Positions 7,471-53,937 of a stretch of DNA of 64,000 nt are shown in pieces. A program made the position numbers and the translations under genes. Source of the DNA: Lepidodermella squamata (taxonomy: Eukaryota; Animalia; Gastrotricha); contig JBLDXI010000015.1 of assembly GCA_047495785.1 (NCBI GenBank), positions 3,534,001-3,598,000 of the forward strand, given 5' to 3'. The notes below the pieces were generated by a model. That model had not been told where the DNA came from, made no database searches, and saw only the letters and a program-made list of their open reading frames with translations. How positions within the stretch are numbered: position 1 is the stretch's first letter; the number at the start of each line of letters is the position of its first letter.

Positions 7471-10400
7471 ATGAAAGCACGAATCCTATCAGTTTCGTCA
7501 GCTTTGATCTGCTTGGCCTTTGGCTTATGGCCGGCTCAATGTTCCCCAATGGTTAGGAATTACAGTTTTGTAGCTCGTATGGGATGTTAGTTTATTTTCC
7601 AGGCATCTCGTTTCGAGCTGCCATCAGACACTCAACCTTGCCGCGTCCCAGCTCTACAAAACGGCCGGTTTTTGTCCTACTCTCCTAATGAGCCTCGGCA
7701 AAATTGGCCATCTCTACAGGCGAATTCGCAAGTCAGCTTAGGAACTACCTTAATCGCGGATTGCCAACCTTGCTACCGATATGCCGATAACTCGACTGAA
7801 TCTGATAGCGAAACTGAGATCGAATGCCTTGGAAATAATCTGTGGAACGGCATTGTGGGGAATTGCCGGAGAATCGATGATTGCAGCCAAGTGGTAAGCC
7901 TAAATGTTAAAAATGTCCCACAAAATTGAAGGAATCACTGATTATACCGAATCAGACCTTACCAGCTGTCAAGCCTGCTGGCAATAACACAGAATGCGGC
8001 CGCCCGAATGACGATCTGAGCGACGGGGAAACACCACAGCCTTGGATGGTAACCTTAAATAACGACAATATTAAGGAGGCTATTCTCCTTTATTTTCAAT
8101 GTTTTAGGTTTACATTAAAGTTCAGAAAGGCGGAATCTTCATCAGAAACTGTTCCGGCGTACTTATCGATCAAACGTGGATCCTGGCAGCTTCAGAATGT
8201 ATCGAAACTACGGATGGAGAGAGGCCGACCTCGTAATTAAAATTGCGGTGATTTTGCACTAGAAGTCTTAATAGTCATTTTTTTCAAGAATTTCGCTCCA
8301 AGATGGCAGATCGGTTTTCGTTACTAACATTGTCGAAGAGCCGCAGAACAAACAGTTGGCTTTATTGATGATTAACCCTTTCGTCATCTATTCCGAAAAA
8401 GTCCGAGCCCTATGCCTGCCAGACGTCCAATGCGAATCTAAAAATTCATCGATTTGTACCGTTGGATCTGTTTCAAGTTACGAGAATGTCAAAATTTCAC
8501 CTGCTAATTGCCCCTCGCAATTTTGCGCGAATGCTGGCGGTAATAGATCAGGGTCACTTTTCATGTGCGAATTCGCTGGCCGACTTTTCGCATCGGGAGT
8601 TGAACTTTCTCGCAACAATAACTCATGTTGCAGCGACCATCAGATCGGCTTCGTCGCAATTTGTCCATTGATCACCTGGATACGGTGGACAATCACCAAA
8701 TTCACGAATAGAGGGGAATGTAAATTTGATTTCATGTTAAAAATTGCGTAGAATTAATGAGCTGTTTATTTGATAGATTGTCCCGATGAATTTCCTGAAG
8801 TCTATTCTGGCGTAGTCGATGCAAGGCTAAGTTTTTCCGATGTCGATCAACAGCCTCAAAATGGCTATCGCATCGGAACTATCGCTGATATAACATGCAA
8901 TAATGGCTATAGTTTGTTCGGGTCTGATCGCATTATTTGCACAGCAGCCGGGGTTTGGAGCCTGCCTGGCACCTGTTTATTCCTGAGTAAATTCAAAAAT
9001 TTCCAAATTTTCGAAATTTCAATTCTTTTTCGCTAGTTACCCCTGCTCCTCCAATCGCGGAGGTCTTCATTGATTCAGAATCAACGACCGAGGCAGTGGA
9101 AATCACTAATCAGCCAGGATTATGTGGCGTTCCAAATAAGCTTCGTAAAGCTAATAACGCGCCCGAGTTTCCTTGGATAGTATGTTTTTTCTATTTCGAA
9201 AATCTTACCTATATTGCTGGGATTTTCCATCTATCAGATAACAATTAAAAGTTACCTCAACACCTTGACTCAAGGTTACAAAATTTGCGACGCTGTTGTT
9301 ATCGATTACGAACATGCAATCACAGCTGCTCATTGTGTAGTCCATCGGACTGAAATCGCTAAAAGGTGAGATTGCATTTTTTTTTAATTTTCAAAAACTT
9401 TTCAAATTTATAACCAGAGTTGACCTCTCCGTCTTTGAGGATGGCGATTACCAATCAGTTCGATCAGTTCTGGTCATTTTACATCCGAAATTCAAAAATA
9501 AAGACCTAGATTATTCGATTTTCGATTTTGCGATCATTAAAACGAGCAGAATGCCTTCGATAACGCCGATATGTTTGCCTACGACGGGCTCTAATTTTTG
9601 CAGATACTCGAGATGTGAAAACGCCGTGATTATTGACAATGGTATAATTACCTATTATAACCTAAAAAAAATTTAATTTATTTATTTTCAAATTTACAGT
9701 TGAAAATGGGAGGAATTTCACGAAGCTCAACTTGACCATAGCTCTAAGAGCTCATTCGAATCGTTCTTCAATTTCGATATCAACAGCGTGGGCAAATGGG
9801 ACTTGTGGCATGGAATGGAGTAACCCTCTAATGTGCTCTAACGACGACGGACGGTACCAATTAGGGGCTTTAGTGCCGAATGGGCGGTTGAAATGTTCGA
9901 TTAAGCCTGCTGCTATCTACTCGAACATTTGTCCGGCGCTGCCGTGGATCAACCAAGTACTGTCAGGATGGACAGGATTTAAGAGTAGGAAAGCAAATAA
10001 ATTATCATCTTGAAATTACTCACAAGCAGTGACGGACATTATTAGGTTAATTTCTGTAGAGCAAAAGCCGTTTGAATAAAATTTCTGTTTAGAAATCTCA
10101 TTTGGAGGCGTCTCGTTAACTGAGATTCCAACTCAAAATTAAGGCATGCCAGCACTTATTTTTCGATTTCGATTGCGATTTCAACTTCTTGATCGATATA
10201 TAGTGATGCAAAGTCGAAATCGATTCCCGCTATTTTAAATCGATTTTAATTTTATCGATTTTAAAAATTGGTGATTTTTTCCAAAATAAACTGATCAGGA
10301 GACCATCGTAAAAAATGCCTCATCCACCAATCCGATGGTGCCAGGTAGCTAAAAGAAAAATTCCGGGGTCATTAGGGTGACACATAGAGTGACATTTATC

Positions 10401-13400
10401 GCAAAATTCACGTGATGGGAAAATACATCGGTTAAACCTGCTAATAAAAAAATTTAAATGCTCATGAATTTTGGGAAAATCTGGAGATTAAAGCCTAAAT
10501 TTGGGGGTGATATAATCCATTCCAATTCTCTGGTTTCAGTCAAATCCAGCAATATCTCACATACCGTAACGGGTCCTAACTTTGGACAAAACACCTCTTT
10601 TAATTTAAAAAAATTCGGTTTTCGTCTAAAAAAATGGAAAAAAATATCCAAACCTCCGCCCAAGGAAGCTGCGTGGACAGGTGAAGTTTGGAAAATTTAG
10701 AAGCTCACCTTGATTTTAAAAAAATTGGTAAAGAAACCTCTAAATTTGGACACTTGTTCCCAAATTTGGACACCTCATTTGCATATGCTAATTCGACCTT
10801 ACACACATTTTATTTCTTGTTGCGCAATTTTTCTCGTTTTTTCAAAGGCGACTTTTGTAGCCGCGCGCTTGAGACTAAAATAATGCTACCGATAGGATTC
10901 ACTCATCGTCAGATTTAATGCAGATGTACCGTAACGAGTGGTAACTTTGGACAAAACGTGTTTTTCGAACATTAAAAATCAGGCTTTGCTCCTAAATTTC
11001 TGAAATTTTTACCAAAGGTGGGGACGGTGATTCTTGAATTTACTGCAAATTCTAGAAATTTTGAGAATTTTACCTGACCTTTGGCTAATTAATATGTGTT
11101 CCGGTAACTTTGGACAATTAGAGGGTAGCTTTGGACACTCATTTGCATATGCAATTTCATTGCAATTTCATTGTGAATTATCTGTTATTCATGGTTTTTC
11201 ATTTAATCTTGGGTCAGATATCGAAAAAAATTATGAACAGATGGCGCATCATCTGTTTCTCGGAAGTTCAATAAAAATACATTTCTGCGCAGCAGCATAC
11301 TTAACCCGTCCAAAAGTGTCCAAAATTACCCCAATTTTCACCTGTTTTTCAGGTAAATGCTCTGCTAAAACGCGTCGACGGATTGTCATTTTTTCTTCGA
11401 TTATAGGGAGAGTAAAGATAGGAGAATACTCATGCCAACTTTCATTGAAAACTGATCGATTATTAGAAAGATAGAAGGGGGGTCCCAAAACGGCACCCAA
11501 AGTCTCACTGCTTGCAACTTTTTCTGAAATTCGATTTCAGCTCCAATCGTCTTGATTTTTATGTCAAACAAAAGCTGAAGAGACGGAGCATTTTATGCGA
11601 AAACCCCATGATTTAAACTTTCAACCCTGAAAAGTTGCAAACCTGCAAAGCCGAAAGTGTCCAAAGTTACCCTGTCCACAATCACCACACGTTACGGTAC
11701 GCAATACCAATTATACACCAGGATCTTAATACCGTTAATGAACCATGAATCTTCTCGAAACTATGATAAACCAGGTGAAAATGTCTCTGAAGCACCGAGT
11801 CTCATTTAGAAAGTAGACGGAGGGATATCAGTTTGAGGTTAAACCATGGGTTGAGGTTTGAATGAGTCGTGGAGTTTCTTTATCGCTGAACTATTGACAT
11901 GTTTTACCGAAAGTGAACTGTCATTTGTCCCATGGTACGTGCTGTTCACCTGTTTAATTAAAGCTGGCGCCGTCGGATTTGTATTCGGATACATTATTAT
12001 TCCCTATGCTCTCTAGCCAAAATCATGAAAGCATAGCCTAGGCCGGGAGTCATTAAGCTAATTCCAATGTTCTATCAATGCGATGCCATTCTTTTCAAAA
12101 ACTGACAAAAAGCATACATTTCGTTTGCATATGCATAGAGATAAAAATATCATTAAAAGTGTCCAAATTTAGAGGCTAAATTCAAAGTCACCTGTATCAA
12201 AATTGGCTTGTCCTTCTGCCGAGATTTTTTTACAGAATTTAGTTTAGGTAAATCCCCATTTGCAAAAAAAATTTCAGCCCCAACCGTTCACAGGTGAGCA
12301 TTTGGCAAGGGGGGTCCCAAAACACCTTTCTGAGTGATCGAGCTTCGGCGATTTTTCGCAAATCGATAGTACGTGAAATCATTGGCAAATTTGGTACCGT
12401 TGGAAAGCCCACGAAGGGAGCTATTTTTCAGTGAAATTTCTAAACTTTTATCAGTTATGCACAAATTGATATTTGGGGCTAAAGCTCAAAGTGTCCAAAT
12501 TTGGGGTGTCCAAATTTAGGGCGCGTTACGGTGTAAGTAAATTATTTTTGCAGATTCGTATTTCACCGAAATTCCGGAACCGAATTACGCGTACGAACTC
12601 AACATCATTATTGGAGTTCCAGTTTCGTTCATTTCAGCTGTTGGCACACTACTTATTTTGTACCTCGCGAGATGGTTTTACAGGTAAGGCCAATTATGAT
12701 GGCAGTAACTTTTATTCTCACTGGAACCCCTCGATAGCTCGGGGTTCCAGATCGGGGGGAAATTATTTTTCTCCATGGCTAGCCATAGAGTATTCCCTCA
12801 TTCCAACAATAAGCGCATGGTAAAATTCAGCCTTTGGGAAATTAAATTTTTTCTCTATGGCTGAATTAAAATTTTTAAGGTGGAATTTTCATTCCAATTA
12901 TATATGCTATTTTTACAGGGGTATGCCTCTTTAACACCCCAAAAAGTGGCTCCAGATGGTGCGCATGTAGGAGTAGGAGTAGGATTAGGACCCTTATTTC
13001 GCAATTTTCTTTTTCAGCCACAATGCCCTGATAAAAGAATCCGAAAAACGCCTGCCTAGAAACGTTTACGAGCTTATTAAAAACCAGCCCAACTGCGAGA
13101 AAGTGTTTCGAAAATTAGCCGATGACAACTTTCGAAGCCGAGTTCTCTTGGAACCTGAGTGCGTTAGAATCAACAGGAACCAGGAGCTAGATCGTGGCTA
13201 CTACGGAGTGGTACGTCGAGGCGAATTCCATCTACGAAATTCAACGATCGTCCAAAGCGTGGCCGTTAAATACCCACTTACAACGGCTGGCGAAGACGCT
13301 GAGAGACGGCTATTCGCTATATTCACAGAAGCTTTGGCTATGGCTGAACTTAATCACGAAAGTCTACTTCCATTAACTGGAGTTGTCATGGCTGATGATG

Positions 13401-15159
13401 GCTTGCCGATGCTGGTGACACCATTCATGCCGAACGGATCCCTAAATAGATATTTGCTAAATATGGACAGAGATTTATATGAATCTGATTCATCACTCCA
13501 GCCGGCGCTTAACGAAAAGTTGCTTGGTTTTTGCCGCCAAATTTGCGACGGAATGGCTTATCTAGCCGGGAATAGAATAGTTCACTGCGATTTGGCGGCG
13601 AGAAACGTACTGCTGGACGACAATGAAATTTGTAAAATTTGCGATTTCGGTCTGGCGAAATGTTACAGCACGGATAAAAATTACTACACGTGATTTTAAA
13701 TTTCCTCAAAATTCAACTTCAATTAATTTTTCTTTTATCAGATCTAACCAGAATCGCGTGCCACCTCGATGGCACCCACCGGAGTCCTTCGGGACACAAC
13801 AACAGAAGGCGAGGTGGAAGTTTAACGAAGAAACTGATGTTTGGTCATATGGCGTAGTAATGTGGGAAATTTTTACACGTAAGCGTCGAACAATTATTTT
13901 TTCATGTCAATTTTGCTGATTTTTTTCGCAGTTTGCAAGTTACCTTTCGAGGATAGAAAAAACGAAGACTGCGCACATCATTTAGCATGGTTACACCAGC
14001 GATTCAAAGACGCAAAAATCGACAAATCACTCGATGATCTACCAAAACCACGTTTATGCTACATCAATCTGTAAGATTTTCGTTAAACAGAGTGTCTCAT
14101 AATTTGCGCAATATTTTGTGGGAAATTAAATATATCAGGAGACTCTTCCATCCTTTATCCACAAATTGAACATTAACAGGAGAAAACCCGGAAAACCCCG
14201 ATGGTAACTGGTTCGGTAATTTTTCGGTATTTACCCGGTTGGACCACATTTTTCGGATTTTTTAATCGCAATGACAAGTGACATAATTGATTACTATTCT
14301 CATGGCGAAGGTACGACTTTTCAGCAGTGACATTCCGCAAATGAGGGTCAAATCATCAGTGATTTTTCATCAGTGAAAATGAGCATTGACATTTGAGCTG
14401 CGACATTTGCGCAGTGAAAAATCATCCGTGACAAATCAGCAGTGATTTTTCTTTATTTATCCTACATTTTTTTCAAATTTATTATTTTCATCTCAGTGAC
14501 ATTTGCGCAGTGACATTTCAGCGGAGACATTTCATCAACAGAATCTCAGCCGTATTCAGCATAGGGGACTATGCGTTGCATTAAAGTTGAGCTCAAAAAG
14601 TGCAAGTTCAATGCCCGAGATTAATAAATAAAAATTGATGAATTATCACTTGCTCATTTGTCGCTGCTGAAATGTCACTGCTTGTCTTAACACCATTTAT
14701 TATTTAAATTAACACCAAAAGTTGATTTTTAGGAATTGCTACTGACAAAGTGTCACTAATGAAAAGTCACTGCTGAACCTCATTTGCTGAAGTGTCACTG
14801 CTGAACCTCATTTGCTGAAGTGTCACTGCTGAAAAGTCAGACCACGTCTCATGGCATCTTGAAATTTTGTAAGATTTTTCTGGCCACGAGTTATGACTAT
14901 TTGAGTTTTTGATCCCGTTTCCGTGTATTCTCTTTGTTTGCGTTACCTATAGAACACCCTGTAATTTAGGAATGAAGCTGATTTGATTTGTGTTTTATTT
15001 AGATACAACAAAGTTATGAAGACCTGTTGGCGGTACAATCCAATTCACCGGCCTAAATTCGCTGATCTCAAGATTTGGTTACAGGATCCGGATCGTACCT
15101 CTAGAAGCTTATTGGACGATATGTTAAATGACATTGATGGCGACTTTATCTTTGAATAA
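7471..15159 (+). CDS. Receptor tyrosine kinase: signal peptide - Sushi - inactive trypsin-like - Sushi - inactive trypsin-like - TM - MET-like Tyr kinase
   Basis: Signal MKARILSVSSALICLAFGLWPAQC; CCP cysteine/Trp patterns at 7640-7870 and 8775-8985; trypsin folds at 7990-8710 and 9120-9985; TM exon 12554-12683 (IIIGVPVSFISAVGTLLILYLA) phase-compatible with the flanking exons; kinase VAVK, HCDLAARN, DFG..DKNYY, DVWSYGVVMWEIFT, CW...RP. Confidence 0.75.
10564..12531. mobile_element. Non-autonomous TIR DNA transposon (CCGTAACG...CGTTACGG termini, Tc1/mariner-pogo-like) in an RTK intron
   Basis: Left end TA|CCGTAACG..AACTTTGGACA, right end TGTCCAAATTT..CGTTACGG; repeated TTTGGACA/TGTCCAAA subterminal motifs; no transposase ORF. 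Confidence 0.7.
10929..11697. mobile_element. Related MITE nested inside the 10564-12531 element
   Basis: TA|CCGTAACGAGTGGT...ACCACACGTTACGG|TA, i.e. TIRs plus TA target duplication. Confidence 0.75.
12700..12990. repeat. Intronic repeat fragment related to 25240-26310
   Basis: Shares GGAACCCCTCGAT..CTCGGGGTTCCAGATCGGGGG(G)AAATTA..CCATAGAGTATTCCC and TGCGCATGT.GGA with the 26150-26310 region. Confidence 0.7.
14088..14961. mobile_element. MITE (CAG.GTGT termini) in the last kinase intron of RTK1
   Basis: CAGAGTGTCTC...GAACACCCTG|TA; internal GGAAAACCCCGATGGTAACTGGTTCGGTAATTTT shared with the 25005-26440 element. Confidence 0.65.
14307..14846. mobile_element. Foldback-type MITE nested in the previous element, 8-9 bp TSD
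   Basis: Direct repeat TCTCATGGC at 14298-14306 and 14847-14855; TIRs GACTTTTCAGCAGTGACA / TGTCACTGCTGAAAAGTC; many CAGTGA subterminal repeats. Confidence 0.75.
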
Positions 15160-17847: not shown

Positions 17848-20800
17848 ATGTTCAGGAAGCTACAAGGCGTCATATGGATCTTCCTATGGTTATTCGGGAT
17901 AGGTAATAAAGAAAAAAATATTTTAGCTCCAACGTAATTTTTTTAATTCCCATGCAGTATTTCCCAACGAACCAGAAATAATAGAGCCCAGTGATGGCAG
18001 TGCATCGGACGATCAAGTGGCTAGATCTCAGCAAATACCGCCTCAAGTTGACCACTGCCGGTTCTTATTTCAAAGCCCGTCCATCTCGCCGAGCGCATCT
18101 GTAAGCAACGAAAAAGGCGCGCATGTCTTCATATCACCCGCCGGGCGATTCGCCTCGCCGACGATACCTATCACAACGGCTACGAACCGGCAAATGCTGC
18201 TACAACCGTCGCGAGTCTGCGAGTTTGCCTTCATCGCGTCGGCGAACGAAAAAGTCGACATTGCCTTCACGGATTTCGACATGCCTGGCCATCCGCCTCA
18301 ATGCAAACGGGCGTATCTCGATATCGTTTTCCAATCCGATGTTAGCGAGTTCAGAAATTTCGTTGAACTAAATCATGAAAACAGGTTTTTTTCAGCAAAT
18401 TTTTCGAAAATTTTGTTGAAGTTTTCTGGTTTAGATATTGCGGTAAAGATCTCATAAATGTTCCGCATAGACTTATTTCGTTGCACCAATCGATCTTCAT
18501 GCTTATGGACACGACTTCGATGAAAAATAACAGCGAAGGCTGGAGAGGTTTTCGAGGGACATTTGCCTTCATCCCAGCTCGTAAAAATTCACTTATTTTC
18601 AAGATTTATCAATTATCAAAACTTTATAAAGGTCCTTACCATATCGGGACACCTTTACCACCAGCAGCCAGTGGCAGTAGCTTGGCTTCAGCTTCGTTGT
18701 CCGAATGTGGTGGCCAGCTGATTCGATCAAGCATGACGCCTTCTGGGGTCATTTTGTCGCCGAATTACCCGGGTCTATACGGCGATGATGCTTACTGCTT
18801 TTGGCGCCTTCAAGGCAACCCTGGCGAGAGAATCCGCTTGACCTTCAACGATTTCGGAATCTTTTTCGGCGATGAACAGTAAATTAGTTGTATCCACTCT
18901 GGGCTCTTAAAGTTTCATACCTGTTACATAGATGTCCCTTCGATTTCGTCAACATTTACGACGGCTTCAACGCTTGGTCACCGTTGCTAAGGACGCTTTG
19001 CGGCCAGTTACGGAATGGCGACGTCACTCTATACAGCCGTGGATACGAAATGTTTATTGGTAATTTATTTAAAAATGTTCAGTCTGATTTTTCAATTGAA
19101 TTTCTTAGAATTTGTCAGCGGTCGGGGTCGATATGATAGTCGAACTTTTGGCGGCTTGCCCTATTGGATGCCAAAGGACGATTTCTCGGTAATCCTTCGG
19201 TCTTTTAAATTTTACTATTTTTTACGAATTTATTTTTAGTATAAACGACGAGGGTTCAAGGCTTCATTTGAATTTTCAAGCAAAATCGTACCCCTCAGCA
19301 ATATTTTGGGCGCGAATGCTGCTCATATAGCTGGGTCGAAATGCGACCAATTGATTCAAAATACGATCGGGCGAAGTTCGGCAGGAAAAGTAGAACCGTT
19401 ATCACCCCCTCAAACTGTCGATTCGGCCCTTTCAATATCGGCAAACTCGATTTTCTCGCCATTCTACCCAGCCGACGCTCCGGAAAATATCACCTGTATT
19501 TACACGTTTCAGGGCAGAAACGAGCGTGATTACATCGATAAAGTTCGACTGGTGGTCGTCGACTTTGGCGAAGGAACGGGCGAGGCTCTTTTGAATGATC
19601 ACGTGCTGTTGAATCCTCAAAATTGCAACGAGAGACCTGTGCTCGAAAACTACGATGAATTTAACAGCACCAAGCTATTTTCCGTCTCATTTTACTCAGC
19701 CGGACTGTCGTCGATAACTAGCAAAACATCGGATAAAAATGCTTGCAAACAAGACGGTTCGAACTTATTGAAACCGGGCTCAGTCATTGGTAAATTACTG
19801 GCAAATTGCGATTAATCATGAATTTTTTTCTTTTTTTTCTATAGAATCTCTTGGTCCGAATTTGACGATGACGTTTTCAAGTTCCGATATCTCAACGTTG
19901 AATCAAAAGCGCAGATTTTTATTCCAATACAGCTTTGTAAGTCTTTCTTGCCGTACTATAACTAAGGATAAGTTGGGACAAAACCTCATGGTTTTCGACT
20001 GTTAAGAAATCAGTTTTTGCTCAAAAATTCAAAATTTCGTACAAAATAATCGGGCTGGATGATAATCAGTGATTCCTGTTTTTTTTCAAATTTTTCCTAA
20101 TTTACTGGATTTTTGGAAATTTTTTAAAGCTTTTTAAAAATACGACCTTTTGAGTTACCCAGGATTTGCCCATATGGGTCGAATTTTTAGGATGTTTTTT
20201 TTAATTTCCTAAAGCTATAATTTTCTTATTAAAGGATTAAGGGTTAGGTACCTCGTTTGAAACCATTTGAAGCTTGGGGAAAATATTTGATTGATTTTTT
20301 TTTTCATTTCAGATTCGAGATTATCACGTCTCATCTGCTGGAGCTGGTCGCCAAACCGCCGACCATACGTGCCATTACGTGTTCAATTCATCGATTTACG
20401 GCGGAACCAACAAAAATGACATTCCAAACAGTGCCGAGTTACACGAACAACCTGTACAGCAATTCATTTCTTTCTTCACATCACCCCACTTCCCGCGGCC
20501 GTACCCGACAAATGCGCGGTGCGTGTATGATTTCATCATCGACCGGCAACGGTACAGCCAAATGCGCATTTGGTTCGATTTATTCGACGTAGGCGAGGCG
20601 CCGTTTCAGCTGACCGATCGCATTAGGACGTGTCGAGATCACGACCACGTGGCTATTTATCAATTTCTGCCTAGTTCACGGTCTTCTGATGTGACTTCGC
20701 CTAACCCTGGGTCATATTCGGCGGCGTCATTTCCACCTGGCACGTTGCCAGTTTTACATTCATTGATTTGCGGACGCTTTTTGCCTGGACCAATTGTTAG

Positions 20801-22680
20801 CGATCCCGAATCAAGCGTAATTTTGAATTTTTATTAAAAATAATTAATTAATTTTTATTCTATAGGGTTTTCAAGTTGTTTTCAACAGCGGCGTAAAGAA
20901 ATCTGCCGCTGCAGTTCAGGGTGATTTCCGAGGCTTTCGGGCTAATTTCGAGTTTCTCGTGCCTCCCCCGGTCCCGTCTCGAGAAGGAAGGCCCGTTAAC
21001 AGTTCCGTCAGCATCGAATGTCCGGCTAAGCAAATCGTAGTCGGACGTAAAGGAGCGATTGTTAGCCCTGATTATCCAACATCTTTCTACCCAGCCCATG
21101 GCGTAACTTGTGACTGGACTATTCAAACTTACAGCGATAGTGCAAAGCTTCAGTTGATGCTGACAGAGTTCGAAATTGAGGGAACTTACAATCCAACAGT
21201 AAGCTAATACAACAAATCAAGCTATTTAAGGTGTTTTGATACAAATTGTCAGGTTGGACTCGAGAATTGTCAAAACGCTGCTCTGGAGATTTACAGCGGC
21301 CCCAGTTTGGATCAGCCGACTGTCATTCGATGTTCGAGTGCTTCGATCCTAGCTGGAGAGACTTTCATTACGCATGGAAACAAAGCCAGAATACGGTAAA
21401 GTTTATTTTATTTTTCGTAACTTTGTTTGAGGTTATTTTTTTCGCTATAGGTTTCTTACGTCACCAGCTTCGACTGGTGGGCCTGGTTTTCGGATAGATT
21501 GGAACGAAGTATTTGATGTTAATGGTAAATTTCGATATTAGTCAATTTATTGACTGCCTAATTATTGAGTTATTTTTCCTAGAAACCGAATGTCGTATGT
21601 CACCAGCGACTAAATTGTGGTGCTCTGGATCTCGGCGATGCATTTCATCGGAGCTGCGATGTGATGGTTTGTTCATTATTATTCAATTTTCGAATTTTTC
21701 GAAAAAAGCCCAAATTTTCCTTTCCCTATTGGCTTATGCTATTTTATAGAGAAAATTACGGGGATAAAACCAGTGAAAACTCTATATTTTTATCAAATAC
21801 GGTTACGGAGATATCCAAGCGTGAATTTGGTCACGTGACCTTATCTGCCGTCACACCTGAGTGATTATCTCAATAACGGTGATAGATACGAAGCCGCTCT
21901 CAGAGACAAAAATCATCAGAGAGATGAGATCTATTTACAAATTTGTCTACAAATGATAATTTTTGCAAAAAACATTATTTTTACAAAATATGTGAATTCA
22001 GGAATTTTAATTAAGGTGGATTAATTATTATTAATTTCAAACGTTTTTTTTCTACAGGAATTCCGCATTGTGGTTTGACGGACTTGACTGATGAAGACAA
22101 GTGCTCGCGGCCGATAGCGAACCCAGCCAGTCTGGTTCTGATCGCTGCCGGCGGATCAGCCGCCCTTCTCAGCCTCGTTGTCATCCTTCTGGTTGTAATA
22201 TGCCGTTTGCGGCGGCAACGCGTCAAGCATAGGCAACTCGAGAAGGAAGCCCTGCCGCCAACAAGCGACAATAGCTCGCCGGAACACGCGACCCGGTCGA
22301 CAAGCCGGCGCGATAGCAGCAGTGATTCATCGATTCGCTACAACCTTAACCGCCGGTTGATCATAAGCGACGAACCACAGGCATCGGCGTTGCGGAGTTC
22401 GTTCATCGAACGCAAGCCAGCCCCACCGCCGCCATTACCGCCGCCGATAATTAACACTCGCAATCAGCATCACCATCACAACAACAATTACCAAAATCAA
22501 CAGCAGAATCATCACTACCCGGCTAAGCTGAGCGTGAAGACGACGAAATGTGTTGAGGAGACGGTGCTCATCGATACGGAAACAGTCAGTGGTAGCACGG
22601 TGACCGCCTCGGCCAGTTCGAAAAGCAACGGCGGCGGCGCGAAACGAATGCAGCTATTCGAAAAAATCACTATTGTTTGA
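17848..22680 (+). CDS. SOL-1/LEV-10-like single-pass protein: signal - 5 CUB - LDLa - TM - cytoplasmic tail
   Basis: Signal MFRKLQGVIWIFLWLFGIV; CUB signatures (SPNYPGLY, CPFDFVNIYDG, SPFYP..C.Y.F, SPHFPRPYP, SPDYP..C.W.I); LDLa CISSELRCDGIPHCG..DEDKC; TM LVLIAAGGSAALLSLVVILLVVIC; ends EKITIV. Confidence 0.8.
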
Positions 22681-22928
22681 TAAATATATATAGAAGAGTC
22701 TCACTCTTTTTCTATTGTTTATTATATTGATGACGAAATTTGAAAAATTCGTGGATAAAATATACTTTTTTATCAGAAGAAATAAAGCGCTACCTTTCAT
22801 CCCAATATGTGTCGCGTATAATATGACTCATCTTCTTAACGTAATTTAAATACGTGAGCATCATTATAAGCCCCGAAAAACCTGAGCTGAGAATGTTGCA
22901 CTTTTTATAAGCTAATCTGTAACGTTCA

Positions 22929-25900
22929 ATGCTTGACCGGACGCCAATTTACCTTCTCTTGGCTGCAATTGGATCAATTTTGGCAGCAGGCAATATTTGC
23001 GATTCGTCCTATCAGTCCGGGCTGGTTAGCTTGCTGGCGAAAGATTCGGAGAAAAAGGATTCGAAATTTTGCACTGGTATTCTGATTTCTGATCAATGGG
23101 TACTAACATCAGCTGATTGTTTGGCGGGGAAATCTTCACCTGAGTAAGTTGTCTATCTCTAAAAGATCTTTAGAGGCTTCATCACAATTTTTCTAGCTTG
23201 GAATTCGGAATGAATGACCGTCTCCGTTACGGTTCATTAACTGAAGGTTCAATCAGCAGAGGAAGTTTGCTAGTTTGCCAAGAAGACAATGCAGATTTAG
23301 CTCTGGTGAAAATCGACTCTCCAGTTAAATTTTCCGATAAAATTCGGCAAATTTGCTTGCCAGATTCTAAACTATGCAGTTCAAACCCACTGAACCGTGA
23401 CGTCTCTGAAATCGACTCTTGCAAACAAGGTTTTGCAGTCGGCTGGAGTAAACGGCCACCAGTTGGGAAAATCCAAACCTCCGGCATTCAAAATTGGAGC
23501 ATGGCAATTATTCCTTTGAATGACCGAAGCTGTGATCTAGCTGTTAATCAAACGGACAAAATTTGCACTACAACAGATTTTACAGTTCTCGAGCCTGGTG
23601 GAGTCCTAATGTGCAGTCCGAGCGACAACGGGCAATTTTATGCCATCGGACTAGCGAATAACGGAACCTATCGAGGAATTACTATACCATCAGTTTTCAG
23701 CCGAATTTGCTCTCATTTAAGCTGGATTAATCAGGTCATATCCGGAAATCATAAATGCTCGAAAAATGGTAATTAATTGACCGATAGAATTTTTTCTCAT
23801 TCCATCGAATTGCAGGTTTGTCCAATGAGGCAATTATAACAATTGCTGTCACAGTCACCGTTGGTTTGGCCATCATTTCAGCCGCTGCCGGTTATCTTAT
23901 CTATCGATTCAACCTCATGAAGAGAAGTCGCAACCAATTGCTGAGAATTTTCAGCTCGAATACAGCTACGGAACAAGATTCACCTGCGACCCTATTAGAA
24001 AAGCTGAAACTGGACCCATCTTGGAATGAGATATCGCCGTTACTAATCTCACCACCTAGTCAGCTTAAAATCGAGAAAAGGCCGTTCGACAAAGGAAATT
24101 TTGGGCGAATTTTCAAAGCGAAACTGATTGGAATGAAGGAACGATTAGCTGTTAAAGTTGAATATCGCTTTGATTCACATCGTAATCACGAGTTGATGTT
24201 ATCGGAAAGGGTGCATTTCGTGATACAGACTCTTCCGATCATGACCTTGGATCATGAAAATGTCCTGAAAATTTTGAAATTAGCGATAATTCGAAATGAC
24301 ATACCTTGCATTGTGACACCCTACATGGAGAACGGTAATTTGAGGAAATTTTTGCGGAGCCGTAAATTTATTGGTGAGACGCTGTTCGGATACTGCCAAC
24401 AAATATGTAAAGGAATGGCCTATCTCGAGGGCAAAACGTGGCTTCACCGGGATTTGGCCTGTCGCAATATTTTAGTGGATATCAATCAGCAACTGAAAAT
24501 TAGTGATTTTGGTCTCGCGCAATGGCTTCCGCTAAATGCAACTAGGTGAGCATATTGGACTTTTTAACCTCATTTTTTGTTATCTCCTAATTATAGCTCA
24601 CCAAATGTTGCTATTGACGCCACTCCCCTGCGCTGGCATCCACCTGAATCGTTTAACGATAATAAATTCGATCTGAGGAGTGACGTTTGGTCTTTCGGCG
24701 TAGTTGTCTGGGAAATTTTTACCCGTGAGAATAGCTAAAACAAGGAATTTAGTGAAATTTAGTTTTTTTCCCTCCCCATAGTATGCATTGATGAGCAGCC
24801 TTACGAGGACAGATCGGATGCATCTGTTAGGCAATTCATCAATAACGGCGGTCGATTAAGCTGGCCAATGGAAAAGTTTCAGTCATATATCCCATTGTGA
24901 GTCTTTGCAACTTATTTGTCTTTGATCTCTCCTAAAAATTTGAACAGATTTACGCTGATGAAACCGCTAAGGTTGTAGTAGTGGATTTCCATGTAGACTC
25001 GGTACAGCGTGTCCCAAAAGTTGCACAACAATTTCTTGATTTAGCCACGTTTTGTTGGATTTCCAATTAATTTTATTAAATTGAACCTACCGAGAGAACC
25101 TTTATACGCGATTTAAAACCGAAGAAAACCTGGAAAACCCCGATGGTAACTGGTTCGGTAATTTTCGGTATTTCACGCGTCTGGACCAAATTTCTCCGGA
25201 CTTTTTTAATGCTATTAACAAAAGACATACTTGATTAATATTCCCACATACGCATGGTTAAATTTTGCCATGGGGAAACACATGTTTCTCTATGGTTATA
25301 AATATTTCTCTATGGCTTGAAACTGCCACAAATTTGGGCAGCATTTTGCTAGAAATTGGCCTCAAAACCCCCAGAAAACCCATTTTCTCGAGAATCTTAG
25401 GAAAGTCACTAGAACAACGAAAACCCCAATTTTATTTAAAAGCAATTTCACGTGCAAAAACAAAAATGTGACCAAATGAGGTGAAAAAGAGGTCGTCGAA
25501 ATCTCTTGCTGGCAGCCGTCGCGATGCAGATCCGGTTTCCCTCCTGATTCGCGGTTTTGAGCGACAACGCAGAAATTCAGCGACTAGCCAAAGCAACGTT
25601 AGACGCGACAATGACTGGTTTCTCGGCGAGTCTTCGACTGGCGAAATTGACCCATATCCACGATTAATTTCCGCTGCGACCTGAATACCATCGGATACCA
25701 TGCAGCGAGCGGATGGCTTTTATCGTTGCCAGTCTCCCAAACGGCGCGATGTAGATTCATTGAATTCTGTGCGCAACCGGCTGGCTGGCGATCGATTTGA
25801 GAGGATTCTTCGAGGCAACGATTTGTTCGCTTCCAGAATCCATCGAACCAAGGCAACTGATGATCTCGGCTTGATGATCGGGCTTGATATCGGCGCTCTG

Positions 25901-26955
25901 AATTCCATGAATCTTGAATACTGATGCTTCGGCCAGCCGGAGAGCATGACGATTTCGACGACGAATGAAGGTTGACCAAAAATCAAGTTGCAAACAAGAA
26001 AAAATTCGCCGGAATGAAAAATGATTTTCTTTTACAAACGAAGAATCATTTTCGTGAAATTTTAAGTTGGATGTTTTATTTTCTCAAAATGGTTACTGTG
26101 AATTCACCCCTGTGTACCTATTACACCCTTTTAGGGAGCCTACAGGTGTCGTGCGCATGTGGGAATAGGATTACTCTATGGCAAACCATGGAGAAATATA
26201 ATTTCCCCCCTCTCTGGAACCCCTCGATTCGTTTGGCTGCGCCAAACTCACTCGGGGTTCCAGATCGGGGGGAAATTATATTTCTCCATGGTTTGCCATA
26301 GAGTATTCCCTTATTCTCGTGATTTCTTGAATTGTTTTCCAATTTTTCTGGCCATGAGATGTGACTTCGTCTCTCATTTTAGAGTTTCTGAACCCTTTCC
26401 CGTGAATTTTCTTTGCTTGTGTTACTTATGAGACACGCTGTAATATTCAAATCAACGATAAAATTTGTGCGACCTCGAGTCATTTTTATTCATGATTTTG
26501 AGATACAGCGACGTTTCGGGTACCAAGTTCCCTTCTTGAGGCTAAAAATCTGGAATAATCGCAAGAAGTAGAAAGTAGCACAACAAGTGGCGATAGGAAA
26601 AAACATAGTGGTCAGGATGTAGTGAGATCAACGCATTAAAATTGCAAGAGCTGTATAAGTAACGCCATATCTCATACTATATCCTGACCACTATGTTTTT
26701 TCCTATCGCCACTTGTTGTACTATACTATCTACTTGTTGTGATTTTTCTAGACTTTTAGCCACATGATGGGTACGAGGTACCCGAAACGTCGCTGTATCT
26801 CAAACTTATGAATAAAAAATGACTCGAGATCGCAACATTGTTTTCGTTTTGATAGATTTACGTTGGTGAATAACGACTGCTGGAATGCTGTTCGAATCCA
26901 CCGACCTTCCTTCGCAACTTTGCAAACTATTCTAGATCAACTATTTCAAAATTGA
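22929..26955 (+). CDS. Receptor tyrosine kinase: signal peptide - inactive trypsin-like domain - TM - Tyr kinase (paralog of 7471-15159)
   Basis: Signal [19 protein letters not shown]; [43 protein letters not shown]; 47-nt phase-1 intron 23769-23815 joins it to [26 protein letters not shown]; [39 protein letters not shown], last exon CW..HRPSF at 26856-26955. Confidence 0.85.
25005..26440. mobile_element. MITE of the same family as 14088-14961, carrying a nested inverted-repeat element
   Basis: TA|CAGCGTGTCCC...GAGACACGCTG|TA; nested inverted repeat ATTCCCACATACGCA (25240) / TGCGCATGTGGGAAT (26153). Confidence 0.7.
26450..26853. mobile_element. ~400 bp inverted repeat resembling paired Penelope-like pseudo-LTRs with degenerate hammerhead motifs
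   Basis: Arms of ~170 bp are reverse complements; each carries stem-loop + CGAAACGTCG followed by AATAAA. Confidence 0.55.
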
Positions 26956-27638
26956 CATATAATCAAGCGTAATACATCAATGTCTCATGATGTTCAGAAT
27001 GCGAATAAAAAATCGAGCCTTACTGATTGATTTTAATGAATACGATAGTGAATTTCAACACCTTGAGGCACGCAACCGTTCCAGCTGCTGCTAAGGTAAT
27101 AAATCAATAATCACAACGCCAATATAATCTCTATACCGATATATTATTTTCTCTGGATATCAAGCCTGATATCGCGTTCGATATTGGTATGATAATATTT
27201 TTTCTCGTTTTCCAGGCCGTAAATGATGTAATGGTATAGTATATATATTTAAGGCGGCTTTTTGCTGTTGTTATAACGCTTAATCTTATAGGCGGCGCAC
27301 TCGTCGCTGGTTAAAATGTGGCCGAATGCTGAAACGAACACCTGGGCCGGCGCGCATGTTTATCCACCCGCCCGCAGCGAGATGATTCCACGCTGATTTT
27401 TTTACGCCTTTTTATTATCTAGCGCAATAAATCACACACATACAAAGCAGTAAATTGCACTTCCCAGATGATTTCTTATGGCCGGTGTAATATCGAGAGC
27501 ATTCATGATATATATAGTTTTTAATCGCCTCGTTATTGTTTTCCGTTTTCATTCAGATTAGGCGTTAAGTCGAGGCGCCACCTTTTATCGGAATGATTCA
27601 CTGATATTCGCATTGGACATTTCGAAAGGTTCCGAAAT

Positions 27639-37747: not shown

Positions 37748-40129
37748 ATGACCGCGATTTCGCTTGGAATAATTGCTCTTTGCATTATATTCAATGCATC
37801 CCGACAAAGCTGTGAAGCAACACAGAACTTGACTGTTCTAGCATTGGTACCTATCACAGGAGCTAGCCCACTGAATGGAAAAATTTGCTCTGCCGCTATG
37901 CAAGTCGCCATTGATGCTGTGAATGCCAATCGGACATTTTTGCCCGACTATTACGTATCGGCTCGATATCTCGACGAAGGACCGCAGACCATTGCTGGGA
38001 TAAAGAATCTAATTGCATTCTCCAACGAAATTTCGATCAACACAGCACCAATAATAGTTGGCCCGATGAACTCGTGCCAATTCATTTCTCCAATGGCTAG
38101 GGCCCTTAACTACGTCCAGGTTACCACCAGATGTGCAGGACCAGTATTCACCGCCAACAGAAAGATGTACCCGAACCTGTATCGAATTGCAAGGCCAGGT
38201 GATTTGATGGAGATTGAACTGTTGTACTTCGCCAAGAAAATCGGCGGTTGGCGACAGGTGGGTCTTGTATTCTCAGCAAAAGCTGCAGCGTTTGGGCCTT
38301 ACATGCAACTTGTTGCAAGGAAAGCAGGAATCGATATCCTTTTCTATGGAGGCGTCACCGACTTCAATTACGAATTCATGTCGTCACTGAAACAGTCGAA
38401 AAGTAGAGTTATAATCGCGTCCCTGCAGGATGCCCAGTCAATGCTACAATTCCTGTGTGAAGCCCATCGAGCTGATATCAAGGGGCCTCAATTTGTGTTC
38501 CTGTTGCTAGGTCCCATCATTGACGCCTACAAGGTTGATCTCCCCGCAAATTGCTCCCGTGAGGCTTTACTTGAGCAACTCAAAATCGCTTTCAGAGGTG
38601 GCGAGATAAGTGAATCGGCGGACAGCTCTAAATTGACATCACTGGGTTATACTGTTTCAGATTTCGAAAAAAGACTGGACATCCGTACCAATCGAGAACG
38701 AGGGCAGGAACACTCTGTAAGGTACAACTGTCATGACGCGATGGCTCATGCTTTACTTGCCTTGGATAACGCTGATAAGGTGCTTCGAAACAAATCTCTT
38801 CTTAGGCTGGAACACTTTTCCCAGAACCCAGAGGCTGTGATGCGAATTGCTAACGACAGTTCAGCTGCGTCCATTATGGTTTCGCTTTTCGACAACATGC
38901 AATTTTCAGATCGGCTAGAACGTGACAATAAAGTGGCGTATCTAACTCAATGGATCAATGATATTCCAACCAATGTCTACATGCTTTGGTATCCGCACAA
39001 AGACGTAGAAGGAATAACAGATCTAGAGAGGCACGAGTCGAAAATGATCAGCAAACCAGTTTGGACAACACGAAGTGGCAAACCCCCGAAAGATCTCTCC
39101 GAAACTCTTCACATTGTGGCAGAGGAAACAACGATTCCATTGCTTATTGCGATTATTATCTTGGCTTTCATGTCATCGGTTATGGCCGTATCTGCAGTTT
39201 TATTCATTGCCATTACACAGCAAAAGCTCAACATAATGAATACCAGATTTGAGAAAATAGCTATCGGATTACTTTGCTCCGGAGCATTACTTCTGAATTT
39301 AGCAGGAATAATGTTCCAACTTGGCAGTTCGGCTGTTGTTTGCCCTCTTCGGGTCGTCTTTACTTCACTTGGATTAGCATCAATTGTCCTCGCTCTAGTA
39401 TTCATTACAACAAAATTGGTCATCACTAGTAGAATGAAAGTGGCTACCTCAACTACACATTCTCAATGGAATTCAGCTTCTTCAAAGCGAGCTAAGACCA
39501 CCATTGGGTCTTTTCGATGGAATTCACACTCGTCGAAGCGAGCCACTGCAAAGTCTGTCGTGTCTCAAGGCAATAAGAGGTCGCTCGCTTTGCTGCCTTC
39601 CTCTAGAACTCCGGCTGGAGGCATGAAGTTCTTCTCTTCTGGCGTGATATCTTTTGTATCGACTGTGGTCATTACTTGTGTTTGGATTCTAGTTGATCAG
39701 CCGAAACAGCTTGAATCGCTAAGCAACGAGTCATATGATGAAGTGCTTGACTCGTATTACGTTATAATTACTGAGCAATGTGGATCTGTAAGCGAATTCT
39801 ACTGGACTCTTGCTATCGCCTGCGTCAATGTATTGTGCTTGTTGAGTGTGATGCTGAAAGTTTTCACCGGAGTGACATCACTGTTAAAGTATACGACTCA
39901 GCTCATCGGCCTCAAGTACGCAGCGATTAATGCGATTTTCGTCCTAATTGCCACTCTTGGCTTAGCGGTGTCTCTTCAAGATCAGGTTTGGCGCAATGCA
40001 GTATGGTCTTTCGGTTTGATAGTATTCGCTAATTCAATATACTTCTTCGTGACTGTCTTGCCCTTGATAATCACGGGTCTCGCGAAGTCCACTATACCGT
40101 CAGCTACTGTGACCACGTGGCACAACTGA
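37748..40129 (+). CDS. Intronless class C GPCR, GABA-B-like (Venus flytrap + 7TM), copy 1
   Basis: Signal peptide; A.Q.AIDAVNAN..FLPDY, IIVGP, RKMYPNLYR, GWRQVG; no cysteine-rich domain; 7 TM with VCPLRV and W..VD.P. Confidence 0.85.
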   Translation: MTAISLGIIALCIIFNASRQSCEATQNLTVLALVPITGASPLNGKICSAAMQVAIDAVNANRTFLPDYYVSARYLDEGPQTIAGIKNLIAFSNEISINTAPIIVGPMNSCQFISPMARALNYVQVTTRCAGPVFTANRKMYPNLYRIARPGDLMEIELLYFAKKIGGWRQVGLVFSAKAAAFGPYMQLVARKAGIDILFYGGVTDFNYEFMSSLKQSKSRVIIASLQDAQSMLQFLCEAHRADIKGPQFVFLLLGPIIDAYKVDLPANCSREALLEQLKIAFRGGEISESADSSKLTSLGYTVSDFEKRLDIRTNRERGQEHSVRYNCHDAMAHALLALDNADKVLRNKSLLRLEHFSQNPEAVMRIANDSSAASIMVSLFDNMQFSDRLERDNKVAYLTQWINDIPTNVYMLWYPHKDVEGITDLERHESKMISKPVWTTRSGKPPKDLSETLHIVAEETTIPLLIAIIILAFMSSVMAVSAVLFIAITQQKLNIMNTRFEKIAIGLLCSGALLLNLAGIMFQLGSSAVVCPLRVVFTSLGLASIVLALVFITTKLVITSRMKVATSTTHSQWNSASSKRAKTTIGSFRWNSHSSKRATAKSVVSQGNKRSLALLPSSRTPAGGMKFFSSGVISFVSTVVITCVWILVDQPKQLESLSNESYDEVLDSYYVIITEQCGSVSEFYWTLAIACVNVLCLLSVMLKVFTGVTSLLKYTTQLIGLKYAAINAIFVLIATLGLAVSLQDQVWRNAVWSFGLIVFANSIYFFVTVLPLIITGLAKSTIPSATVTTWHN

Positions 40130-43172: not shown

Positions 43173-45488
43173 ATGAGCGCGATTTCTCTTGGAATACTAG
43201 CTCTTTGCATTCTATGCAGTGCATCCCAGCAGAGCCGCATAGCAACGCAGAACTTGACCATTCTAGCATTGGTACCTGTGACAGGAGCAAGCCCTATGAA
43301 TGGAAAAATTTGCTCTGCCGCTATGCAAGTCGCAGTTGACACTGTGAATGCCAATCGGACATTTTTACCTGACTATTACGTATCGGCTCGATATGTTGAT
43401 GAGGGGCAACAGGCTACTATTGGAATAAGGAATCTTATTGCTTTTTCTGTCGAAAGCGTTATTGATAGAGCTCCAATAATAGTTGGCCCGATGAACGCGT
43501 GCCAATTCATAGCTCCAGTGGCTAGAGGCCTTAATTACGTCCAAGTGACCACCAGATGTGCAGGACCAGTATTCACCGCCAACCGAAAGATGTATCCGAA
43601 TTTGTATCGAATCGCGAGGCCTGGTGATTTGATGGAAATTGAGCTGCTGTACTTCGCCAAGAAAATCGGCGGTTGGCGACAGGTGGGTCTGGTATTCTCA
43701 GCAAGAGCTGCTGCCTTTGGGCCTTACATGCAACTTGTTGCAAGGAAAGCTGGAATCGATATCCTTTTCTATGGAGGCGTCACCGACTTCAACAATGAAT
43801 TCATGTTTTCTCTAAAGCAATCGAGAAGCAGAGTGATAATTGCGTCACTACAGGATTCGCAGTCCATGCTACAATTCTTATGCGAAGCTCATCGAGCGGA
43901 TATCAAAGGACCACAATTCGTGTTCTTGTTGCTGTCTCCAATCATTGATGCCTACAGGGTTGATCTCCCTGCAAATTGTTCTCGTGAGGCTTTCCTAAGG
44001 CAACTCAAAATTGTATTCAGAATTGGCGAGAATAGTGAATCGGCGGACAGCACTAAATTGACTTCACTGGGTTATACTGTTTCAGATTTCGAAAAAAGGC
44101 TGGACAACCGGACAAATCAAGAACGAGGGCAAGAATATTCTGTGAGGTACAACTGTCATGACGCCATGGCTCATGCTTTACTTGCCTTGCATAATGCTGA
44201 TAAGGTGCTTCGAAATAAATCAACTTTTAGGCTGGAACACTTTTCCCATATCCCAGAGACTGTGATGAATATTGTTAATGAAAGTTCAGCTACGACCAAT
44301 ATGGTTTCGCTTTTCGACAACATGGAGTTTTCAGATCGCCTAGAGCGTGACAATAAGGTGGTTTATCTCACACAATGGATCAATGATATTCCCACCAATG
44401 TCTACATGCTTTGGTATCCGCACAAAGACGTTGAAGGAATAACAGACCTAGAGAAGCACGAGTCAAAAATGATCAACAACCCAGTTTGGATAACACGAAG
44501 TGGCAAACCACCGAAAGATCTTTCAAGAACTCTTCACATTGTGGCTGAGGAAACAACAGTTCCGTTGCTTGTTGTGATTGTTATCTTAGCTTTCATGCTA
44601 TCTGTTGTGGCAGTGTCTGCTGTTTTAATTATTTCCATTAAGCAGCAAAAGCTCAATATTATGAATACCAGGTTTGAGAAAATAGCTCTCGGATTACTTT
44701 GCTCTGGGGCATTATTTCTGAATTTAGCGGGAATAATGTTCCAGCTTGGCAGTTCGTCTGTTGTTTGCCCTCTTCGGGTAGTCTTGACTTCACTTGGATT
44801 AGCTTCAATCGTCTTCGCTCTTGTATTCATTACGACAAAATTGGTCGTCGCTATTGGAATGAATGTGGCTACGTCAACCACACATTCTCGATGGAATTCA
44901 GCCTCGTCAAAGCGAGCTGCGAAATCTGTCGCGCTGCAAGGCAATAAGCGGTCGCTCGCTTCGCAGCCTTTCTCTAGAACTCCGGCTCGAGGCATGAAGT
45001 TCTTCTCTTTTGGCGTGATATCATTTGTATCGACTGTGGTAATTACTTGCGCTTGGATGCTAGTTGATCAGCCAAAACAACTTACATCGCTAGGCAACGA
45101 GTCTTACGATGAAATGCTTGACTCTTATTACGTAATAATTACTAAGCAATGTGGATCTGTACGCGAACTCTACTGGTCTCTATCAATCTGCTCCTTAAAT
45201 GTCCTATGCTTGTTAAGTGTGATGCTGAAAGTTTTCACCAGAAGGAAATCACTGTTGAAATATAAAACTCAGCTCATCGGCCTGAAGTACGCCGCTGTTA
45301 ATGCGGTCTTCGTCTTAATTGCCACTCTTGGGTTAGCTGTATCTTTTCAAGATCAGGTTTGGCGCAACGCAATTTGGTCTTTCGGTTTGATAGTATTCGC
45401 TAATTCAATACACTTCTTCGTGGTTGTCTTGCCCTTGGTAATCACGAGTCTCGCGAAGTCAGCTACTGGGTTCTCGGGGCACAACTGA
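43173..45488 (+). CDS. Intronless class C GPCR, GABA-B-like, copy 2 (tandem duplicate)
   Basis: Collinear and highly similar to 37748-40129 including flanks (37510-40560 vs 42910-45860). Confidence 0.85.
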   Translation: MSAISLGILALCILCSASQQSRIATQNLTILALVPVTGASPMNGKICSAAMQVAVDTVNANRTFLPDYYVSARYVDEGQQATIGIRNLIAFSVESVIDRAPIIVGPMNACQFIAPVARGLNYVQVTTRCAGPVFTANRKMYPNLYRIARPGDLMEIELLYFAKKIGGWRQVGLVFSARAAAFGPYMQLVARKAGIDILFYGGVTDFNNEFMFSLKQSRSRVIIASLQDSQSMLQFLCEAHRADIKGPQFVFLLLSPIIDAYRVDLPANCSREAFLRQLKIVFRIGENSESADSTKLTSLGYTVSDFEKRLDNRTNQERGQEYSVRYNCHDAMAHALLALHNADKVLRNKSTFRLEHFSHIPETVMNIVNESSATTNMVSLFDNMEFSDRLERDNKVVYLTQWINDIPTNVYMLWYPHKDVEGITDLEKHESKMINNPVWITRSGKPPKDLSRTLHIVAEETTVPLLVVIVILAFMLSVVAVSAVLIISIKQQKLNIMNTRFEKIALGLLCSGALFLNLAGIMFQLGSSSVVCPLRVVLTSLGLASIVFALVFITTKLVVAIGMNVATSTTHSRWNSASSKRAAKSVALQGNKRSLASQPFSRTPARGMKFFSFGVISFVSTVVITCAWMLVDQPKQLTSLGNESYDEMLDSYYVIITKQCGSVRELYWSLSICSLNVLCLLSVMLKVFTRRKSLLKYKTQLIGLKYAAVNAVFVLIATLGLAVSFQDQVWRNAIWSFGLIVFANSIHFFVVVLPLVITSLAKSATGFSGHN

Positions 45489-50979: not shown

Positions 50980-50980
50980 C

Positions 50981-51562: not shown

Positions 51563-51576
51563 TCTGAATGTATGTA

Positions 51577-52892: not shown

Positions 52893-52894
52893 AT

Positions 52895-53916: not shown

Positions 53917-53937
53917 TATTATTCTAAGTTAGAAAAT

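Follow-up and report, generated by a model that had tools for sequence, protein, structure and literature searches.

A predicted receptor tyrosine kinase with a dead trypsin-fold ectodomain in the gastrotrich Lepidodermella squamata

We analysed a stretch of 64,000 nucleotides from the gastrotrich Lepidodermella squamata (assembly GCA_047495785.1, contig JBLDXI010000015.1, positions 3,534,001 to 3,598,000), referred to below as the window; all coordinates are window positions. On its forward strand, at 22929-26955, lies a gene that most plausibly encodes a signal peptide, a dead trypsin-fold domain, a transmembrane helix and a tyrosine-kinase domain. The same window holds a larger paralogue, in which a dead protease domain likewise precedes a transmembrane helix and a kinase (Table 1). 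Here we describe the gene, the evidence that it is maintained by selection, and the ways in which its unusual architecture can be read.

Gene model and ectodomain

The gene model, rebuilt from the sequence, has six exons, and all five introns carry GT and AG at their ends. Its coding sequence of 1860 nt specifies 619 amino acids, with the frame open across all six exons. The introns measure, in order, 53, 47, 51, 57 and 1959 nt. In-frame stops lie immediately 5' of the ATG, and the preceding gene has its own stop (22680) and its own AATAAA (22781). These features rule out an upstream coding exon and, with the polyadenylation signal downstream of the receptor gene, make both gene ends well defined.

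Table 1. Coordinates of the receptor gene, the contents of its last intron and the paralogue in the window
Feature	Position	Strand	Remarks
Paralogue	7471-15159	+	Sushi, dead protease, Sushi, dead protease, transmembrane helix (~12598-12660), kinase
Exon 1	22929-23143	+	Start codon, signal peptide, N-terminal part of trypsin fold including LTSADC
Intron 1	23144-23196	+	53 nt, phase 2, GTAAGT..TAG; 8 residues past His57-Cys58 motif
Exon 2	23197-23768	+	Remainder of dead trypsin-fold domain
Intron 2	23769-23815	+	47 nt, phase 1, GTAATT..CAG; in-frame TAA at 23774-23776
Exon 3	23816-24545	+	Transmembrane helix, juxtamembrane region, kinase N-lobe to DFG
Exon 4	24597-24724	+	End of activation loop, without Tyr; RWHPPE 24631-24648; DVWSFG 24682-24699
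Exon 5	24782-24896	+	Kinase C-lobe, alphaG region; paralogue introns match in position and phase
Intron 5	24897-26855	+	1959 nt, filled with repeats
Proximal copy of acceptor and first 15 nt of exon 6	24939-24962	+	In intron 5
Repeat block, 1.9 kb	24963-26847	+	In intron 5
Element with terminal inverted repeats	25003-26442		In repeat block of intron 5
Nested palindromic miniature repeat element	26163-26316		Inside the 25003-26442 element
Second palindromic repeat element, 395 nt	26454-26848		Ends 7 nt before exon 6
Exon 6	26856-26955	+	Kinase C-terminus (26875-26913), TGA stop, no C-terminal tail
AATAAA polyadenylation signal	27004-27009	+	49 nt past stop codon

The extracellular half is recognisably a trypsin fold. 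Each of its two exons independently passes the curated cut-off of the Pfam Trypsin model PF00089 (20.6 bits): exon 1 scores 27.3 bits (E 3.8e-6) over profile positions 23-46, and exon 2 scores 26.2 bits (E 8.3e-6) over positions 86-220. A phmmer comparison with the PDB matches exon 2 to elastase and chymotrypsin C (E 3.8e-7), the alignment starting in the Asp102 region and reaching the C-terminal helix. Of the 30 nearest clusters found with a protein language model, 26 were Trypsin, masquerade-like ones included. The C-terminal helix of the fold reads WINQVISG (23723-23746), and an N-glycosylation sequon, NQT, lies in exon 2 at 23546-23554.

The full catalytic triad, the oxyanion hole and the S1 pocket of an active S1 peptidase are not found in this domain. 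His57 is replaced by Asp (LTSADC, 23103-23120, where TAAHC is expected) and Ser195 by Pro (LEPGG, 23588-23602, where GDSGG is expected); Asp102 is retained in NADLALV (23288-23308). In the PDB alignment, four residues that form the floor of the S1 pocket, positions 189-192, are deleted, Cys191 among them, and Cys220, the partner of Cys191, is likewise absent. The disulfide pairs Cys42-58, Cys136-201 and Cys168-182 are retained by alignment.

Heuristic calls place the signal peptide at residues 1-21 (22929-22991), with a cleavage-type site (AAG followed by N) at residues 21/22, and find only two hydropathy peaks in the protein, at residues 5-25 and 264-292. The trypsin-fold domain begins directly after the signal peptide and ends eight residues before the transmembrane helix. 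Flanked this tightly, the whole ectodomain is one dead trypsin-fold domain.

A special link to the beta-chain of HGF was also considered. It was dropped, as the HGF beta-chain is absent from the 60 best PDB matches, which are led by elastase, chymotrypsin C, thrombin and C1s.

A good acceptor-type 3' splice site (ctttttataag) lies 17 nt 5' of the ATG, within 22900-22928, and only 148 nt separate the ATG from the AATAAA of the previous gene. The acceptor and the tight gene spacing would fit spliced-leader trans-splicing of genes packed close together.

Transmembrane helix and kinase domain

Exon 3 opens with the coding sequence of the transmembrane helix (residues 268-292; 23830-23904). By hydropathy, the protein has a signal peptide and a single transmembrane helix between ectodomain and kinase. 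The ectodomain exon itself encodes no membrane anchor, and exon 3 has no in-frame ATG ahead of Met297. The initial annotation had proposed a dead trypsin-fold domain as the entire ectodomain, joined across a 47-nt phase-1 intron with an internal stop codon to a transmembrane helix and a tyrosine kinase with HRDLACRN and DFG motifs. At the level of the sequence, our analysis bears this out on each count: PF00089 is matched in two exons with both substituted catalytic residues, nothing else stands between signal peptide and membrane, the intron and its stop match exactly, and helix and motifs are located in exon 3.

In both exon 3 (E 6.5e-32) and exon 4 (E 2.4e-13), the PK_Tyr_Ser-Thr model (PF07714) is matched and outscores PF00069. 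The motif set of tyrosine kinases, comprising HRDLA(A/C)RN, DFG, W-x-x-PE, DVWSFG and CW..RP.F, is present, with WHPPE in place of WMAPE, as throughout the clade to which the kinase belongs. The G-loop reads DKGNFGRI (24088-24111), Asp replacing its first Gly. The VAIK lysine is Lys376, in LAVKV (24145-24159); HRDLACRN (24445-24468) supplies Asp475 and Asn480, and DFG (24505-24513) supplies Asp493. The CW...RPSF motif falls in exon 6, and the protein stops 13 residues past RPSF, without a tail. No tyrosine is found in the juxtamembrane region or in the tail position.

Among solved structures, MET is the closest kinase (74 bits), with ITK and an EGFR construct (counted over two stretches) alongside; the named relatives are "hepatocyte growth factor receptor-like" proteins, MST1R and Eph. 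In a quick maximum-likelihood tree, the gene groups with its paralogue in the window and with two proteins from the searches, P0151 and P0032, outside the MET/RON/IPT clade, although this group is long-branched and weakly supported (SH-aLRT 81-85). A firm assignment as MET-like was dropped for this reason, and the term serves only as an approximate label.

Paralogue, constraint and the last intron

The paralogue was located by tblastn of the gene model against the window. Its kinase carries HCDLAARN, DFG and RWHPPE (13775-13792). The two genes are 37-41% identical in their protease-like segments and 33% identical in the kinase. Three kinase-domain introns agree in position and phase (2, 1, 2), and in all three protease-like domains of the two genes a phase-2 intron lies 8-10 residues past the His57-Cys58 motif. 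Both kinases have Asp at the first G-loop glycine and RWHPPE instead of WMAPE. The shared order, introns and motifs indicate that the unit of dead protease, transmembrane helix and kinase was inherited whole, not assembled twice.

Tested against the paralogue, domain order, introns and RWHPPE show that the two predicted genes belong to one family. Both have a membrane-proximal dead protease domain and one transmembrane helix. The paralogue adds Sushi modules and has two dead protease domains, whereas the ectodomain of the present gene is a single one; as modelled, this gene is thus the minimal member of a lineage-specific family of dead-protease receptor kinases, the kinases belonging to a divergent receptor-kinase clade marked by RWHPPE. 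The two have also diverged: Gln at the alphaC Glu position is found in this gene alone, and kinase identity is low, as given above.

Three receptor kinases from environmental contigs, P0151, P0152 and P0177, with CUB or ANF-receptor ectodomains, also have RWHPPE where nearly all kinases have (K/R)W(M/T)APE. The motif may mark a lineage-specific kinase clade or a lineage-wide change. The CUB receptor kinase P0152 (ENA metagenome contig L003, 7186-8772) was called intronless and reads through an in-frame, intron-like segment; this segment lies exactly at the WEIF(T/S) intron site of the gene and its paralogue, so the position of this intron seems conserved.

A public DNA sequencing run, X2, comes from another haplotype or strain. 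A single contig of this run extends without interruption over 22800-24503, through the ectodomain, intron 2, the transmembrane helix and the kinase N-lobe, with 23 substitutions and one indel. This sole indel is a 2-nt insertion at 23789, inside the 47-nt intron. Over all exons, X2 differs from the window at 27 coding positions, 19 of them synonymous and 8 non-synonymous, and codon position 3 holds 21 of the 27. The ratio pN/pS is ~0.12 in both halves of the gene (binomial p 1.5e-7 against neutrality). Synonymous differences make up 7 of 10 in the ectodomain (p 0.002) and 12 of 17 in the transmembrane and kinase part (p 3e-5). The gene is under purifying selection, and this pattern, together with the unbroken contig, excludes both a neutral pseudogene and an assembly chimera.

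Intron 5 is full of high-copy repeats, at which the depth of X2 reaches 59,800 compared with ~83 in the exons. The acceptor and the first 15 nt of exon 6 occur twice, as TTTGAACAGATTTACGCTGATGAA in the proximal copy and as TTTGATAGATTTACGTTGGTGAA at 26848-26870; the alignment score of the two is 26, and the maximum among 500 shuffles was 24. On the simplest reading, the ancestral intron 5 would have been 51 nt long, like its neighbours, and the 1.9-kb block would have landed 15 nt inside exon 6. The insertion would have duplicated the acceptor, so that the reading frame is recovered when the distal copy is used for splicing. Another conceivable outcome is a mini-exon of 24 nt, in frame, at 24948-24971, whose donor (GTTGTA) is weak and whose use would add 8 residues. 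X2 also has the exon-6 insertion, in contigs across 24566-25152 and 26710-27000. Since both haplotypes carry the insertion and an excess of synonymous differences separates them, constraint acted with the insertion in place, which argues that the distal acceptor works. The gene would then be a case in which an insertion into an exon is apparently circumvented by duplication of the splice acceptor.

The element with terminal inverted repeats has a relative of the same family at 14087-14965, and the two sit in the homologous last introns of the two paralogues; their end segments are 83% and 72.5% identical. A short, internally deleted form of the element has a very high copy number in the public DNA data, in which ~25173 is joined to ~26342 in many contigs.

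Readings of the receptor and its place among known systems

The classes of receptor tyrosine kinase are defined by ectodomain. Within the literature and protein searches made, no described class has a dead trypsin fold as its only ectodomain, and the predicted protein is a receptor tyrosine kinase with an undescribed, lineage-specific type of ectodomain. No receptor combining trypsin with a tyrosine kinase turned up in the literature searched. None of the 150 nearest kinase-bearing proteins (phmmer), among them one bdelloid protein, showed any likeness to the ectodomain; the domains found in the nearest kinases scanned were CUB, Gla, IPT/TIG or SH2, or there were none. Relatives of the ectodomain exon were found neither in a word-indexed protein search (105-332 aa) nor in JGI metagenome contigs, and a kinase scan of the latter returned two distant kinases without a protease-like part. 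PF00089 was absent from the 120 best relatives of the clade member P0152, a survey that is not an exhaustive query for Trypsin plus kinase; the ectodomains of these 120 include CUB, ANF receptor, IPT/TIG, WIF, GH18, GH16 and Eph modules. When exon 3 was compared exhaustively by HMMER with 1.84 billion representatives, identity nowhere exceeded 47%, and the proteins ranked highest were multi-kinase concatenations of gene models. An Rfam scan of the window gave no match.

We consider it probable, although some way from certain, that the gene encodes a real, selected, single-chain receptor that works in the following general way. The exons, we infer, are spliced into one mRNA. The product would be a type I single-pass receptor, with a signal peptide, a single dead S1 domain, a transmembrane helix and a tailless domain of the tyrosine-kinase type. 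The dead protease fold would serve as a binding module rather than as an enzyme, and clustering driven by a ligand would change the state of the cytoplasmic kinase. Since the alphaC Glu is lost and docking tyrosines are missing, weak signalling or a co-receptor role is favoured: the kinase most likely gives a weak signal or works alongside paralogous receptors, in the manner of ErbB3-type co-receptors. We infer both the binding of a ligand and this mode of signalling.

Several observations weigh against a working receptor. AlphaFold2, run on exon 2 alone as a single sequence without an alignment, gave a poor model (pLDDT 30.6, pTM 0.22), so the fold of the ectodomain rests on sequence homology. 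In the kinase, three PDB alignments and a multiple alignment place Gln400 (24226-24228) at the alphaC Glu position, with Pro403 in the same helix. This Glu is invariant in 33 of 33 comparator kinases and lost only here. The activation loop contains no tyrosine, whereas nearly all 33 comparators carry tyrosines there. The full residue set of an active kinase, comprising the beta3 Lys-alphaC Glu pair and an activation-loop tyrosine, is consequently incomplete. The haplotype in X2 has V542D (24704) in the conserved alphaF helix of the kinase, a radical change that could point to a defective allele or to an error in the contig. Splicing at the distal acceptor (26855) has to prevail over a good proximal acceptor at 24947, whose use would terminate the protein after FTLMKPLRL and truncate the kinase. 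Among the public sequencing runs searched, no RNA run with the gene was found, and one possible RNA run, X1, consists of ambiguous contigs of 60-170 nt that neither show nor exclude the 23768/23816 junction. The protein and metagenome searches made found no orthologue outside the species.

Judging from these residues, catalysis by the kinase may be weak, with no obvious docking sites. The initial annotation called the protein a receptor tyrosine kinase of an unusual class. The name stands for the architecture and the tyrosine-kinase motifs; in the enzymatic sense it is unassured, given Gln400, the activation loop without tyrosine and the missing docking tail. The claim of an unusual class fares similarly. 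The trypsin ectodomain is undescribed in the literature searched, but the receptor is not a one-off, as the paralogue demonstrates.

The most serious rival is that the gene is a decaying or non-signalling member of its family, either a copy recently disabled in the course of gene birth and death or a double pseudoenzyme, with a dead protease outside the cell and an impaired kinase inside, that acts only as a scaffold or decoy. The changes in the alphaC helix and activation loop, the absence of a tail and the Asp at the first G-loop glycine all fit such a product, as do V542D, the missing RNA and a repeat block of 1.9 kb in the former exon 6 with its competing proximal acceptor. Against it, a frame of 619 codons is intact over six exons, and the kinase retains its VAIK Lys as well as the HRD and DFG aspartates. 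The low pN/pS in both halves, between haplotypes that both have the insertion, excludes a neutral pseudogene and leaves a scaffolding role untouched. We regard this alternative as possible, although on the unlikely side.

A bolder form of the receptor reading is that the gene represents a new class in which the dead protease fold is itself the sensor, acting as bait for protease inhibitors, cascade components or microbial proteins. A sensing of inhibitors or pathogen ligands had also been conjectured in the initial annotation. The extracellular and the cytoplasmic part of such a receptor would both be pseudoenzymes, the latter a kinase lacking the alphaC Glu, and it would signal only through active paralogues. 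We find this rather doubtful. If true, the family would be the analogue of plant receptor-like kinases, a modular surveillance system with recognition modules (dead protease, CUB, GH18, GH16, Gla) shuffled onto one kinase clade.

It is clearly unlikely that the locus instead yields two products, namely a secreted dead protease ending at 23774-23776 and a cytoplasmic kinase starting from Met297 or later, or both forms through regulated intron retention. Given the TAA two codons into intron 2, retention would indeed yield a secreted ectodomain; an in-frame Met also stands just past the transmembrane helix, and the search for RNA did not turn up the junction. However, a transmembrane helix without a start codon of its own sits exactly between the halves. 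The 47-nt gap has GT and AG ends and a length typical of this gene's introns, the 2-nt indel between the haplotypes falls inside it, and the paralogue keeps the same order of dead protease, transmembrane helix and kinase. Finally, an assembly or annotation artefact fusing unrelated protease-like and kinase sequences is extremely improbable, as it has in its favour only the general artefact risk discussed for unusual domain architectures (PMC3927609), nothing specific to this locus, and has against it the unbroken contig from an independent haplotype and a paralogue arranged alike.

If the gene does encode a single-chain receptor, as we favour, it is the cleanest member of its family for asking what a membrane-tethered pseudoprotease binds, since it has nothing else outside the membrane. 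It would also be a natural test of whether binding by a pseudoprotease switches a kinase, and of the extent to which signalling persists once the alphaC glutamate is gone.

Parts of this arrangement have precedents. HGF and MSP, the ligands of MET and RON, have a dead serine-protease domain as their beta-chain. The nearest solved and named kinases are MET/RON-like, and a dead S1 domain would take part in receptor signalling in both systems. In HGF and MSP, however, the dead protease is in the ligand, whereas here it is in the receptor and shows no special similarity to the HGF beta-chain. MET and RON also have a Sema-PSI-IPT ectodomain, twin activation-loop tyrosines and a C-terminal docking site, all absent from this gene. 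An inactive, carbonic-anhydrase-like ectodomain is found in the receptor tyrosine phosphatases gamma and zeta. They resemble the proposed receptor in using a dead enzyme fold as the ligand-binding ectodomain of a single-pass receptor; they differ in the fold and in having a cytoplasmic phosphatase instead of a kinase, and there is no homology.

Secreted serine-protease homologues (the masquerade and clip-domain types of insects, haptoglobin, azurocidin and protein Z) have S1 folds that lack the triad, and they work through binding. These are soluble cofactors or ligands, whereas the domain described here is anchored by a transmembrane helix to a kinase. Unlike them, it has neither a clip domain nor an activation cleavage site. 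Tryptase gamma (PRSS31) is an active S1 protease anchored as a type I membrane protein, with a short cytoplasmic tail and no kinase; its topology of signal peptide, S1 domain and C-terminal transmembrane anchor is the same. ErbB3 has lost the alphaC Glu and also the catalytic Asp, and signals through partner receptors. The loss of the alphaC Glu is common to both proteins, but the present kinase retains its Lys, HRD Asp and DFG Asp, and its impairment is only possible.

Several tyrosine kinases near this one also have enzyme-like or recognition ectodomains: P0213 and P0265 (GH18, chitinase-like), P0232 and P0031 (GH16, glucanase-like), P0116 (Gla), P0152 (CUB) and P0177 (ANF receptor). The GH16 examples include a tardigrade protein. 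Such ectodomains suggest that recognition modules have been widely shuffled onto tyrosine kinases in micro-invertebrates.

The upstream neighbour (18017-22680) is a multi-exon gene, apparently for a membrane protein, with several CUB-like segments, a transmembrane helix and a tail rich in Gln, His and Asn; it stops 248 nt before the ATG of the receptor gene. Further downstream, two intronless and highly similar tandem open reading frames (ORFs; 37748-40129 and 43173-45488; 793 and 771 aa) look like class C receptors with an ANF-receptor domain and seven transmembrane helices. A block of intronless, virus-like ORFs at ~50980-59780, with an integrase-like ORF at 58359-59780, fits a Polinton-like element.

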